Shown here: positions 18,428 through 37,718 of the stretch, piece by piece | Position numbering within the stretch: position 1 is the stretch's first letter | How the letters are laid out: every line of letters starts with the position of its first letter | From: Bacillus subtilis subsp. subtilis str. 168 | GTDB taxonomy: Bacteria; Bacillota; Bacilli; Bacillales; Bacillaceae | NCBI RefSeq assembly: GCF_000009045.1 | Contig: NC_000964.3 | Location: 3,968,001-4,032,000, forward strand | DNA: 64,000 nucleotides | Direction: 5' to 3' | The notes under the pieces: model-generated | Told to the model about the DNA's origin: nothing | What the model saw: only the letters and a program-made list of their open reading frames with translations | The model's database searches: none | Made by a program: the position numbers and the translations under genes

Positions 18428-19885
18428 ATGAGTTTCGAAACGTTAAACAAAAGTTTTATCAACGGAAAATGGACTGGGGGAGAAAGCGGACGTACGGAGG
18501 ACATTTTGAATCCGTATGACCAGTCTGTGATCACAACAGCATCTTTGGCAACGGGCAAACAGCTTGAGGATGCGTTTGACATTGCACAGAAAGCCCAAAA
18601 AGAGTGGGCCAAGAGCACGACGGAAGACCGAAAAGCCGTGCTGCAAAAAGCGCGCGGCTATTTACACGAAAACCGTGATGACATCATTATGATGATCGCC
18701 CGCGAAACTGGCGGAACGATCATTAAATCAACAATCGAGCTGGAACAAACGATTGCGATTTTAGATGAAGCCATGACGTATACTGGTGAATTAGGCGGCG
18801 TCAAAGAGGTGCCATCCGACATTGAAGGGAAAACCAATAAGATTTACCGCCTTCCGCTAGGTGTCATTTCATCGATTTCTCCATTTAATTTCCCAATGAA
18901 TCTATCCATGAGATCCATTGCGCCCGCAATTGCGCTGGGTAACAGCGTTGTTCACAAGCCTGATATCCAAACTGCTATTTCCGGCGGGACCATCATTGCG
19001 AAAGCGTTTGAACACGCCGGTCTTCCTGCCGGTGTCCTTAACGTCATGCTGACGGATGTAAAGGAAATCGGGGACGGCATGCTCACCAATCCAATCCCGA
19101 GATTAATCAGCTTTACAGGGTCAACAGCAGTCGGGCGCCACATCGGTGAAATCGCCGGTCGCGCCTTCAAACGAATGGCACTTGAGCTCGGCGGCAACAA
19201 TCCATTTGCCGTTCTTTCAGATGCGGATGTCGATCGTGCTGTGGATGCCGCGATTTTCGGAAAATTTATTCACCAGGGACAAATCTGTATGATTATCAAC
19301 AGGATCATCGTTCATCAAGATGTATACGATGAGTTTGTAGAAAAATTCACCGCCCGTGTCAAACAGCTTCCGTACGGCGATCAAACCGATCCGAAAACCG
19401 TTGTCGGCCCGCTGATCAACGAGCGCCAAATCGAGAAAGCGCTGGAGATCATTGAGCAGGCAAAGACAGACGGCATTGAGCTTGCGGTTGAAGGAAAACG
19501 CGTCGGAAACGTGCTGACGCCGTACGTCTTTGTCGGTGCGGACAACAACAGCAAAATTGCCCAAACGGAGCTGTTTGCCCCAATCGCAACCATTATTAAA
19601 GCTGGCAGCGACCAGGAAGCGATTGACATGGCAAATGATACTGAATACGGCCTCAGCTCTGCGGTTTTCACTTCTGATTTAGAAAAAGGCGAAAAGTTCG
19701 CCCTGCAAATTGACAGCGGCATGACCCATGTCAACGACCAGTCCGTCAATGATTCGCCGAATATTGCCTTTGGCGGAAACAAAGCAAGCGGTGTCGGCCG
19801 TTTCGGCAATCCGTGGGTCGTCGAGGAATTTACCGTGACGAAATGGATTTCGATACAGAAGCAATACCGCAAATATCCGTTCTAA
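18428..19885 (+). CDS. aldY: Aldehyde dehydrogenase
   Basis: ISPFNFP, SFTGST, ALELGGNN, catalytic GQICM, ELFAP. Confidence 0.93.
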   Translation: MSFETLNKSFINGKWTGGESGRTEDILNPYDQSVITTASLATGKQLEDAFDIAQKAQKEWAKSTTEDRKAVLQKARGYLHENRDDIIMMIARETGGTIIKSTIELEQTIAILDEAMTYTGELGGVKEVPSDIEGKTNKIYRLPLGVISSISPFNFPMNLSMRSIAPAIALGNSVVHKPDIQTAISGGTIIAKAFEHAGLPAGVLNVMLTDVKEIGDGMLTNPIPRLISFTGSTAVGRHIGEIAGRAFKRMALELGGNNPFAVLSDADVDRAVDAAIFGKFIHQGQICMIINRIIVHQDVYDEFVEKFTARVKQLPYGDQTDPKTVVGPLINERQIEKALEIIEQAKTDGIELAVEGKRVGNVLTPYVFVGADNNSKIAQTELFAPIATIIKAGSDQEAIDMANDTEYGLSSAVFTSDLEKGEKFALQIDSGMTHVNDQSVNDSPNIAFGGNKASGVGRFGNPWVVEEFTVTKWISIQKQYRKYPF

Positions 19886-19888
19886 ATG

Positions 19889-19924
19889 AAAAAATCCCTC
19901 TGTTTCAAGTACAGAGGGATTTTT
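19889..19924. terminator. Bidirectional terminator aldY/yxkD
   Basis: AAAAATCCCTCTGT-ttcaagt-ACAGAGGGATTTTT. Confidence 0.85.
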
Positions 19925-19926
19925 CT

Positions 19927-20763
19927 TTATTTAGATATATCCACAAACCCTTCGCCAAACACATCGCGTACGTCATGTACGATCACAAACGCTTTTTTGT
20001 CGCAGCTTCTAATGATTTTTTTCAGCATAGACAGCTCCTGTTTGTTAATGACGATATACAAAATCTCTTTTGACTGGCCCGTATAATTTCCCTTCCCTGA
20101 TAAAATCGTCACGCCCCGATCCATCAAGGTATTTACCTGCTCTGCAATCTCACTCTTATTTTCTGAAATGACCGTAATGGCTTTTTTCGTATTCAAACCT
20201 TCAATAATGAAGTCCATCACTTTGGTACCGATATACAGCATCACGATCGTAAACATCATTTTTTCTGCACCAATAATAAAATAAGAGCTAAATACTACGA
20301 TTAAATCAAAAAACAAGAGTGCATAGCTGATATTCCAGTCTAAATATTTATTAGCAATTCTGGCCAGAATCGCGGAACCGGCCGTCGTCCCGCCGACCCG
20401 GATAATCATGCCGATCCCGACTCCGGCAAATACACCTGCGAAAATCGTATTAATGATCAATTCATCAGACGGAATGCTCCACCCATGTGTCAGATGAAGA
20501 AAAAGCGAATTTGCCGCAACCGCAATGATCGTATAAACCGTTGTTTTTCCATCAAGAAACTTGTAGCCGATTAAAAGCAAAAACGCATTTAAGATAAAGT
20601 TCGTGACACCAGGAGACCATTGAAACAGATAATACAAAATCAGCGTAATCCCAGTGACTCCGCCTTCCCCAAGATCATTGGGAATCGCAAATAAATTAAC
20701 CGCAAGCGCGAAGAAAAAAGCGCCAATCACAAGCATAAGTACATCCAGCATTCTCTTTTTCAT
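19927..20763 (-). CDS. yxkD: YitT family membrane protein (DUF161/DUF2179)
   Basis: IPNDLGEGGVTG, GGTTAGS, RGVTIL.GKGNYT, DKKAFVIVHDVRDVFGEGF; ATG 20763 after AAGGAG. Confidence 0.88.
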   Translation of the reverse strand: MKKRMLDVLMLVIGAFFFALAVNLFAIPNDLGEGGVTGITLILYYLFQWSPGVTNFILNAFLLLIGYKFLDGKTTVYTIIAVAANSLFLHLTHGWSIPSDELIINTIFAGVFAGVGIGMIIRVGGTTAGSAILARIANKYLDWNISYALLFFDLIVVFSSYFIIGAEKMMFTIVMLYIGTKVMDFIIEGLNTKKAITVISENKSEIAEQVNTLMDRGVTILSGKGNYTGQSKEILYIVINKQELSMLKKIIRSCDKKAFVIVHDVRDVFGEGFVDISK

Positions 20764-20802
20764 CACGAAAACACTCCTTTTCATTGTTCTGTTCTAGCAA
20801 AT

Positions 20803-20940
20803 AAAAAAACCCAGGAGAACGCTCTCGAAAAAGAGCAGAAACTCCTGGGCTTTTATCCCACCGTGTCATAACAGCCAAGCTGCTATGTGTTTTCTCTCGG
20901 TCACAGTCCAATTTGCATTGCGGAACCCTAGAAAACCACT
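20803..20940 (-). ncRNA. ykkC/yxkD-family riboswitch (variant) with intrinsic terminator
   Basis: Minus strand GGTTTTCTAGGGTTCCG...GACTGTGACCGAGAGAAAAC...ACACGGTGGGATAAAAGCCCAGGAG; the 3' CCCAGGAG is the left arm of terminator CCCAGGAG...CTCCTGGG-TTTTTTT. Confidence 0.92.
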
Positions 20941-21059
20941 GTTTTTATCATATCCTTTTCACTTTCCAATATTAGCATTATAAGGGACGGTTCGAATTGG
21001 TTCAAGGGGTATTTGCGGAGTTTTCATCAGATAAGCTGGAAAAAAATACGATTTATCTA

Positions 21060-21231: not shown

Positions 21232-21873
21232 ATGGCAGGAAAACTAGTACCCTGTAAAGCTTGCGGTCAAGAAATTGCAAAGGGTGTAAAAAAATGTCCT
21301 AACTGCGGTAAGGATCAACGTAACTTTTTTATGCGACATAAAATCATTACGTTTATTCTCGCAGTTGTTGTCATCATTATTATCGGTAATATGATTGGCG
21401 GCGGAGGCGGCTCAGAAGCCACTTCCAAAACATCAAGCAGCAGCAAAGCAGAAACTGAAAAAACATACAATATCGGTGATACCGTAAAAACTGAAAAAAC
21501 TGAAGTGACGGTTACGAAGGTAGAGGACAGAGATACTGTCGGTACTCAATATGTTGAAAAGAAAGCATCTGAGGGAGGTACAATTGTAGCTGTTCAATAT
21601 ACAATTAAAAACGTATCTAAAAAGCCGATTAGCTCTTTTTCAATTCCAACTGTTAAATTAGTTGATGCTGATGGTACTTCTTATGATTCTGATATTGATG
21701 CTTCTGTAAACTATGCAACTGAGACAAAAGTTGATAACTCTAAAATTTTGAGTGATCTAAATCCTAATATTAAAGTAACAGGTGTAAAAGCATTTGAAGT
21801 TGACAAGGAAGCTTATGCAAAAGGCACTTGGAAACTAAAATTCAGTAATGATGTTATTGTGAAAATCAAATAA
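21232..21873 (+). CDS. yxkC: Zinc-ribbon / TM / DUF4352-like surface protein
   Basis: ATG 21232 with AGGAGG RBS; CKACG...CPNCG, one TM, Ser/Gly linker, beta-rich C-terminal domain. Confidence 0.8.
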   Translation: MAGKLVPCKACGQEIAKGVKKCPNCGKDQRNFFMRHKIITFILAVVVIIIIGNMIGGGGGSEATSKTSSSSKAETEKTYNIGDTVKTEKTEVTVTKVEDRDTVGTQYVEKKASEGGTIVAVQYTIKNVSKKPISSFSIPTVKLVDADGTSYDSDIDASVNYATETKVDNSKILSDLNPNIKVTGVKAFEVDKEAYAKGTWKLKFSNDVIVKIK

Positions 21874-29709: not shown

Positions 29710-29775
29710 AAAGCATTGACAATTGATCCAAAAGTAATAATATTAAGATAATTGAAATCTGAATATGAAGTTGTA

Positions 29776-29929
29776 CCTTATCAAGAGAGGTGGAGGGACT
29801 GGCCCTATGATACCCGGCAACCGCTGTTTCAAACAGAATGGTGCTAAATCCTTAAGAACATTGCGTTCTTGCAGATGAGGCGGAGATTTGATCGTTCAAG
29901 CTCTTCCTTACACAAAGGAAGAGCTTTTT
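29776..29929 (+). ncRNA. SAM-I (S-box) riboswitch 1 with terminator
   Basis: CCTTATCAAGAGAGGTGGAGGGACTGGCCC...GGCAACC...GGTGCTAAATCC...GATGAGG; terminator AAGCTCTTCCTT/AAGGAAGAGCTTTTT 29898-29929. Confidence 0.97.
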
Positions 29930-31097: not shown

Positions 31098-31166
31098 TCT
31101 ATCATTGACAGAAATAGAAAATGTGTGAATAATAGATACTATCAGAAAATTTAATAAAAAGGTTTT

Positions 31167-31319
31167 CCTTATCAAGAGAGGTGGAGGGACTGGCCCTGCG
31201 ATACCCGGCAACCGCTGTTTAACAGAATGGTGCTAAATCCTTTAGAGCAATGATTGCTCTTGAAGATAAGGTTGAGATTGTCACGCAAGCTCTTCCTTAT
31301 CCAAAGGAAGAGCTTTTTT
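31167..31319 (+). ncRNA. SAM-I (S-box) riboswitch 2 with terminator
   Basis: Same conserved core as copy 1, P1 CCTTATC/GATAAGG; terminator 31287-31319. Confidence 0.97.
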
Positions 31320-37278: not shown

Positions 37279-37539
37279 GAAAAAAACTCCCTTTCTGCTG
37301 TATGGGTTTCCCCGTTTCCATCATACAACAAATATCCAGGAGCTGGAACCTTATAGTGAAGAAAAATCAGTACTGACATGCTGGTATCCCGCCAACATCA
37401 TATCAGCATAGCAATCCAGCATGTTTTTCCTTTATTTTCTCATTTTAGAATATAAATTTTATTATTGTGAAAATAGTTAAAAAGGTTGATTTTCAAAAAG
37501 TGAAAGGATAAAATACTGCTATCATCTTAGAAAAAGACA

Positions 37540-37718
37540 TTCTTGTATATGATCAGTAATATGGTCTGATTGTTTCTACCTAGTAACCGTAAAAAACTAG
37601 ACTACAAGAAAGTTTGAATAAATTTGAACGAGTTGAAAAGGACAAGTTCTTTTCTGTTTGCTCTTATTTTTCACACTTTCTGCACTTCCAGAATTTGTGA
37701 AGGATAAGAGCTTTTTTT
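37540..37718 (+). ncRNA. Guanine riboswitch with terminator upstream of nupG
   Basis: P1 TTCTTGTA/TACAAGAA, AATATGG, GTTTCTACC, CCGTAAA, GACTA (C discriminator = guanine); terminator GCTCTTAT...ATAAGAGC-TTTTTTT 37660-37718. Confidence 0.93.

Follow-up and report, generated by a model that had tools for sequence, protein, structure and literature searches.

A probable guanidine-I riboswitch with a divergent internal loop in the leader of the Bacillus subtilis YitT-family gene yxkD

The ykkC class of leader RNAs was reportedly assigned to guanidine in 2017 by Nelson et al. In Bacillus subtilis it is represented by the leader of ykkCD, which has been validated for guanidine by reporter and binding assays, which responded to guanidine only among approximately 2000 conditions, and whose genes encode a small multidrug resistance (SMR) exporter of the Gdx type. 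Together with a second locus, yxkD, it gave its name to the ykkC-yxkD motif, and the Rfam family RF00442 (Guanidine-I) was earlier named "ykkC-yxkD leader". Here we analyze this second locus in a window of 64,000 nucleotides of B. subtilis subsp. subtilis str. 168 (contig NC_000964.3, positions 3,968,001 to 4,032,000), which we take to belong to the yxk-yxj region of the B. subtilis map, the gene behind the element being presumably yxkD. The element is already known, being half of the name ykkC-yxkD and one of the two founding members of the motif, and as an RNA element it is nothing new. Our results indicate that it is very probably an ordinary riboswitch of the guanidine-I class (ykkC subtype 1), acting from the yxkD leader of the B. 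subtilis group as a transcriptional ON switch. It resembles the ykkC leader in its RF00442 membership, its group of organisms, its terminator-based ON design and its position before a gene for a membrane protein; it differs in that this gene is of the YitT/DUF2179 type, in that its internal loop carries A at position 32 and an extra U, and in that it is known here from its sequence.

Comparison of the whole window with 4227 Rfam families by cmscan found a full-length RF00442 aptamer of 103 nucleotides on the minus strand, from 20942 to 20840 (model positions 1-107; 72.8 bits against a gathering score of 63; E 5.2e-11). Beside RF00442, a permissive Rfam scan of positions 20700-21050 returned just chance-level matches to eukaryotic long non-coding RNA, microRNA and small nucleolar RNA models, and a competing RNA family at the yxkD leader was ruled out on the basis of this noise. 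The aptamer and the two parts on which its assignment depends are as follows.

20840-20942, minus strand: aptamer of the guanidine-I type (ykkC subtype 1) with P1/P1a/P1b, P2 and P3, supported by the RF00442 match, compensatory changes in P2 and conservation
20894-20909, minus strand: 3' strand of the internal loop, GGACUGuGACCGAGAG, placed by its letters, the RF00442 alignment and the numbering of the D. dadantii structure
20842-20866, minus strand: P3 with the predicted binding pocket (ACACGG, the A-loop AUAAAA and the S-turn GGAG at 20845-20842), placed by its letters, RF00442 and the structure numbering

Guanidine-I aptamers have been crystallised from Dickeya dadantii and from Sulfobacillus acidophilus (PDB 5T83), and every residue named for their pockets and tertiary contacts is present in the yxkD aptamer. 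In D. dadantii numbering, where CUAGGGUUC is C6-C14, GUCCGAGAG is G31-G39, CACGG is C64-G68 and GGGAG is G83-G87, the residues in common are the C6-G39 closing pair, the G37-A38 bulge, C64/C66/G67/G68, the GGG-CCC core of P3, the A-loop and G84/G85/A86/G87. The equivalents of G37 and A38, which contact the ligand in D. dadantii, are G 20896 and A 20895; those of C64, C66, G67 and G68 are 20865, 20863, 20862 and 20861, and those of G84, G85, A86 and G87 are 20845-20842, so that the bases of all the long-range pairs of P3 (C64-G84, G68-G85, G67-A86, C66-G87) are kept along with the A-loop. The yxkD aptamer departs from the crystallised ones in having A at position 32, an extra U before G31, and U-A instead of C-G at the 69-83 pair, a weak pair that is A-U in B. 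swezeyi. From these conserved residues we infer that the yxkD RNA itself binds guanidine.

The ykkC fold is shared by RNAs with other ligands, subtype 2a responding to guanosine tetraphosphate (ppGpp), 2b to phosphoribosyl pyrophosphate (PRPP) and 2c to nucleoside diphosphates, with 2d an orphan linked to EamA (phn_DUF6)/TauE genes. According to a rule restated with the structures, one nucleotide sorts guanidine contexts from other ykkC contexts almost completely: guanidine-I RNAs have A, and 2a/2b RNAs a pyrimidine, in the place of the second A of GAGAG (A46 in S. acidophilus and A38 in D. dadantii). A second marker is G67 of CACGG, on the pocket's floor, which is a pyrimidine in subtype 2. 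Both have the guanidine-I state at yxkD, the first being A (20895) and the second G (20862, within ACACGG). The PRPP riboswitches share the overall scaffold with the yxkD RNA, and A32 is common among them, but they are set apart by GAGCG and ACACC at the two markers, by P0 tails and by purine biosynthesis genes, none of which is found at yxkD; conversely, CCGAGAG and ACACGG occur in no member of the published 2b alignment. Subtypes 2a-2c have conserved tails at the 5' and 3' ends, from which the P0 helix is built; these were not found in the yxkD leader, which runs from CCCAGGAG straight into the terminator loop UUUCUGCUC..., nor does it contain anything like the AGGA-CAGAUUCACUUGAG tail of the PRPP alignment. 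The lack of a 3' tail for P0 is due to the terminator, which has its beginning within P3, as has been described for guanidine-I. Subtype 2 RNAs precede branched-chain amino acid genes or natA, purine synthesis genes, NUDIX genes or EamA/TauE genes, and the YitT_membrane plus DUF2179 context of yxkD matches none of them. Subtype 2d has been described as the subtype most like guanidine-I and it controls a transporter gene, as the yxkD element may; its linkage is nevertheless to EamA/TauE, whereas at yxkD the marker is that of guanidine-I and the gene is of the YitT family. Identity with 2d was rejected since 2d lies across the marker-nucleotide split and has a different gene context, the two being set apart here by published descriptions of 2d, not by a 2d consensus. 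Judged by its letters, the yxkD element is guanidine-I by every criterion tested except the scaffold U32, and it agrees with none of those for subtype 2.

For the class, both the ligand and a mechanism in which the 3' strand of P3 takes part in an alternative terminator, giving an ON switch, have been worked out with other members, the B. subtilis ykkC leader among them. The yxkD leader contains the corresponding parts.

20803-20853, minus strand: intrinsic terminator (the expression platform), with left arm AAAGCCCAGGAG overlapping the 3' strand of P3, right arm CUCCUGGG and U7, identified by folding energy and z-score
20836-20822, minus strand: inner hairpin within the terminator fold
20977-21005, minus strand: putative promoter, with -35 TTGAAC (21005-21000), a 17-nucleotide spacer and -10 TATAAT (20982-20977), matching the consensus at 10 of 12 positions
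20772-20779, minus strand: ribosome-binding site AAGGAGUG, with GGAG 10 nucleotides before the ATG, read from the letters and kept in orthologous leaders

The 3' strand of P3, CCCAGGAG (20849-20842), pairs with CUCCUGGG (20817-20810), which is followed by U7 (20809-20803). This terminator hairpin has a folding energy of -30.2 kcal/mol (z = -4.65 relative to shuffled sequences), and when the whole leader is folded to minimum energy, terminator, P1 and P2 form while P3 is absent, so that termination (OFF) is the expected default. A transcript from the putative promoter would begin approximately 25-35 nucleotides ahead of the aptamer. With no ligand, CCCAGGAG would pair with CUCCUGGG to form the terminator with its U7 tail, and transcription would end before yxkD. 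Guanidinium would be held in a pocket to which the internal loop contributes its G-A bulge and P3 its CACGG / GGAG S-turn, and binding of the ligand would stabilise P3; CCCAGGAG would then be sequestered, the terminator blocked, and RNA polymerase could enter yxkD. Much of this had been anticipated by an initial annotation made from the letters of the window, which described a complete ykkC scaffold (here a full-length RF00442 match of 72.8 bits), quoted strings that are indeed present (GACUGUGACCGAG at 20908-20896 and ACACGGUGGGAUAAAAGCCCAGGAG at 20866-20842), recognised the aptamer tail CCCAGGAG as the left arm of the terminator, and proposed that ligand binding switches on a downstream YitT-family gene. 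The pairing with CUCCUGGG, the ligand-free fold with terminator and without P3, and the YitT_membrane and DUF2179 matches of the gene product bear out those proposals. Its limits for the unit, 19927-20940, need a slight extension, since the aptamer actually reaches 20942 and the putative promoter (21005-20977) lies beyond them.

The divergent feature of the yxkD aptamer is its J-region, CUGUGACC, which differs from CUGGUCC by U32A and one extra U. Against the consensus GuCUG-GUCCGAGAG the window reads GACUGuGACCGAGAG, with A instead of U at position 32 (20901) and a U (20903) inserted before G31. The uninterrupted scaffold U32 is thus absent from the yxkD aptamer, at a position that is conserved in the class without being a defining one. 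In the D. dadantii structure U32 belongs to the G11-U32-U13 base triple, part of the internal-loop scaffold onto which the A-loop docks, outside the ligand pocket. In the PRPP alignment A32 (GACC) accounts for 63 and U32 (GUCC) for 98 of the 161 pattern matches, so that A32 makes up about 39%, and one member has CUGUGACC itself. Among guanidine-I-type aptamers in metagenomes we found, in the matches listed, U32 in 118, A32 in 5 and A32 with the extra U in 1 of 124; the pattern scan demanded exact CTAGGGTTCC and CCGAGAG and covers at least 124 aptamers, and the frequencies are therefore rough. As RF00442 the six listed A32 forms reach 65-92 bits, and genes of guanidine type follow three of them. 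One, at metagenome locus L125, has the identical CUGUGACCGAGAG variant (87.6 bits) and directly precedes a gene for a 106-amino-acid SMR protein; of the NCBIfam models SugE matches this protein best by a wide margin, with 124.4 bits, slightly below the cut-off of 126. Since P1b and P2 of this aptamer differ from those of the yxkD leader, the variant there arose independently. Of the other two A32 aptamers, one (L095) stands before an SMR pair and the other (L147) before an arginase-family gene accompanied by an NMT1-type ATP-binding cassette (ABC) binding protein, both of which are typical guanidine contexts. The presence of A32 in RNAs of both kinds shows that position 32 tolerates A across the whole ykkC fold, without showing A there to be a mark of subtype. 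The combination of A32 and the extra U is a lineage-specific drift of the scaffold triple and might at most tune affinity, folding kinetics or threshold. In the same metagenome set, two contigs (L128 and L142) have two guanidine-I-type aptamer matches each, approximately 11 kilobases and 1.4 kilobases apart.

A genome scan for YxkD gave 80 loci, and the aptamer stands before the gene in just three clades, those of B. subtilis, B. amyloliquefaciens and B. licheniformis. The 18 leaders of these clades form a graded series: those of the licheniformis clade have the canonical CUGGUCCGAGAG (87-94.5 bits), those of B. velezensis, B. siamensis and B. atrophaeus have CUGGACCGAGAG, that is, U32A alone (83-88 bits), and the representatives of the subtilis clade, 11 out of 11, have CUGUGACCGAGAG, with U32A and the insertion (72.8 bits). 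The pocket, the terminator design and the gene remain constant over the series, save for a change at the G68 equivalent in B. velezensis, and the variant is therefore best understood as stepwise drift in one orthologous guanidine-I leader. In every one of the 18 species the identity of the aptamer to that of the window is greater than the identity of the third codon positions of yxkD (0.933 and 0.692 in B. halotolerans, 0.876 and 0.452 in B. velezensis, 0.826 and 0.487 in B. glycinifermentans): the aptamer RNA is under purifying selection. Across 15 aligned leaders, five pairs, in P2 and at 69-83, have compensatory changes; P1 is invariant, and so uninformative on covariation, P1b varies in length and sequence, and the P3 S-turn, the bases of the long-range pairs and the A-loop are invariant except for G68 in B. 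velezensis. The latter exception was seen in strain NRRL B-41580, where CACGUU replaces CACGGU (approximately 2410-2416 of its locus), a G to U change in the pocket wall by which the switch could have been lost or weakened in this strain; its sister B. siamensis keeps G68. In B. mojavensis a 6-nucleotide duplication, GCAUAUUGGCAUUGG (approximately 2349-2362 of its locus), lengthens P1b and the rest of the aptamer is unaltered.

These comparisons bear on the remaining claims of the initial annotation, which had likened the J-region to that of type 2 variants and had proposed an orphan ligand for a yxkD-linked subtype. The J-region does deviate, and A32 is commoner in 2b, but position 32 does not separate the subtypes and the markers are those of subtype 1. 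The yxkD-linked orphan subtype that it named does not exist, the orphan 2d being linked to EamA/TauE, and the orthologous yxkD leaders include canonical guanidine-I aptamers. The RF00442 search with subtype assignment that it had suggested as a check led to subtype 1 and not to an orphan variant; the conclusion of an orphan ligand had come from a non-diagnostic position combined with a mistaken premise about the subtypes.

The gene that the switch would control encodes a protein of 278 amino acids.

19927-20763, minus strand: yxkD coding sequence, with YitT_membrane (residues 8-210, 209.8 bits) and DUF2179 (residues 216-270, 80.2 bits)

This succession of PF02588 YitT_membrane and PF10035 DUF2179 places YxkD in the YitT family (COG1284). 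Its start is the ATG at 20763 and not the upstream ATG at 20784, because of the GGAG 10 nucleotides upstream, the conservation of MKKRMLDV and the public gene calls, which give the same 278-amino-acid product with the same start, the exact protein being present in thousands of assemblies. An AlphaFold2 model built with 29 orthologs (mean predicted local distance difference test score, pLDDT, 81.6) places a beta-alpha-beta domain after a helical membrane domain. In Foldseek searches of the PDB just the C-terminal domain found matches, first to 3hlu, a DUF2179 structure that it also matches by sequence, and then to PstA, GlnK and other PII-type proteins; the TM-score of the DUF2179 region (19927-20120, minus strand, residues ~193-270), normalised to the target, is 0.89 for 3hlu and 0.55-0.65 for the PII/PstA-like structures. 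The model suggests that DUF2179 of YxkD would be a small-molecule-binding regulatory domain on the cytoplasmic side. A search of the literature found no function assigned to yxkD, to the YitT family or to DUF2179, and no transport shown for a YitT protein; recent guanidine reviews do not mention YxkD. The Gdx/SugE SMR exporters, membrane proteins that are turned on by guanidine riboswitches, offer a model for its possible role, yet they have no relation to it in sequence or fold, Gdx having some 105 amino acids and four helices where YxkD has 278 amino acids with YitT and PII-like DUF2179 domains. By analogy, YxkD would most likely relieve guanidine stress. That it does so as a guanidinium exporter, in the manner of Gdx and MepA-type proteins, has in our opinion a chance approaching an even one, and the restricted distribution of the riboswitch-YitT pairing calls for caution here. 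Of a fuller proposal we are more doubtful, though it is possible: YxkD might be the founding guanidine transporter or tolerance protein of the YitT family (COG1284), gated by DUF2179, in an organism with two guanidine-I switches (ykkCD and yxkD) in which the J-region variant shifts the threshold of the second.

Several observations weigh against the main reading, that of an ordinary guanidine-I switch before a gene that relieves guanidine stress. U occupies position 32 in approximately 95% of the listed guanidine-I aptamers and the score falls by some 10 bits through the extra U, so that a weaker or altered response of the yxkD RNA is conceivable. Genes of the YitT family do not count among the recognised guanidine gene classes, and none was near the guanidine-I aptamers of 119 metagenome loci among the matches listed. 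Upstream of the yxkD orthologs at 48-72% identity (L019-L080; B. cereus group, Paenibacillus, Lysinibacillus, Priestia and others) there is no Rfam riboswitch, and guanidine-I control of yxkD therefore does not extend beyond the three clades named above. No solved fold in the PDB was matched by the membrane domain in Foldseek, which makes "transporter" itself a conjecture, and our literature search found no report of guanidine binding by, or induction through, the yxkD RNA itself. As for the orthologs outside the three clades, guanidine-II, -III or -IV or other riboswitches were looked for before these genes and not found, their upstream regions having nothing in common. Some genomes of the B. 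cereus group have two yxkD paralogs (for example L025 and L060 in a single strain).

Since the ykkC fold is known to change ligand by very few mutations, some of the same observations could be taken to mean that A32 and the extra U reshape the fold to accept another ligand, such as a substituted guanidine, a small cation or a nucleotide derivative, which YxkD would transport. The share of A32, at 39% or so in the PRPP alignment and 5% or so in the listed guanidine-I sample, the subtilis-clade RNA having the lowest bit score of the yxkD leaders, the unusual YitT partner and a literature search that found no direct binding data for this RNA would all fit such a change in specificity. Nevertheless, the nucleotides that contact guanidinium and those of the rest of the pocket are unaltered, the two published markers are of subtype 1, conserved P0 tails are missing and the start of the terminator lies inside P3, yxkD of the licheniformis clade has a canonical aptamer, and elsewhere the same variant stands before the SugE-like exporter gene of L125; we therefore regard a different ligand as quite unlikely. 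Least probable of all is that the subtilis-clade aptamer is decaying, with its ligand response lost and the leader left as a constitutive attenuator that keeps yxkD low, as might be supposed from the alteration of a scaffold position conserved at about 95%, the added insertion and the G to U change at the G68 equivalent of the B. velezensis representative, because in 18 species conservation of the aptamer far exceeds that of synonymous sites, the variant is fixed in all 11 subtilis-clade representatives, P2 pairing is kept through compensatory changes, and an unrelated lineage keeps the same variant before an exporter gene.

If yxkD is controlled by an ordinary guanidine-I riboswitch, a guanidine switch before a YitT/DUF2179 gene offers a cheap and clean handle on a large membrane family of no known function, and the wider proposal for YxkD, if true, would provide the first function for this widespread and uncharacterised family. 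Likewise, the series from canonical to U32A to U32A with insertion in one orthologous leader is a natural experiment on how far the scaffold triple can vary with the pocket untouched. In a CRISPR interference (CRISPRi) screen described in a 2026 preprint, knockdown of the yxkD leader ("BMR60") is reported to alter macrocolony expansion in B. subtilis, and the leader was labelled there as a potential guanine-responsive riboswitch (bioRxiv 10.64898/2026.06.23.734000). As its sequence is that of a guanidine-I aptamer, "guanine-responsive" is probably a slip for guanidine, and the guanidine-I assignment corrects this recent label.

Around yxkD the window contains an aldehyde dehydrogenase gene, galE, two S-box leaders and a purine riboswitch. 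The aldehyde dehydrogenase gene (18428-19885, plus strand) converges with yxkD, and a hairpin lies between the two.

19890-19924, no strand assigned: hairpin with a 14-pair stem

It probably serves as a terminator in both directions and would end the yxkD transcript, its role on the minus strand being presumed. On the other side, the divergent neighbour (21232-21873, plus strand) encodes a zinc-ribbon and DUF4352 protein with a low-complexity Gly/Ser linker; this gene is variably present, since in one public genome (L202) galE is directly upstream of yxkD. The S-box aptamers, which respond to S-adenosylmethionine (SAM), are at 29775-29881 (plus strand, 93.9 bits) and 31166-31272 (plus strand, 87.2 bits), approximately 1.4 kilobases apart, and the purine aptamer is at 37523-37624 (plus strand, 85.4 bits), all of them well above their thresholds; presumably they are the leaders of B. 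subtilis yxjG/yxjH and nupG (yxjA), which they fit.

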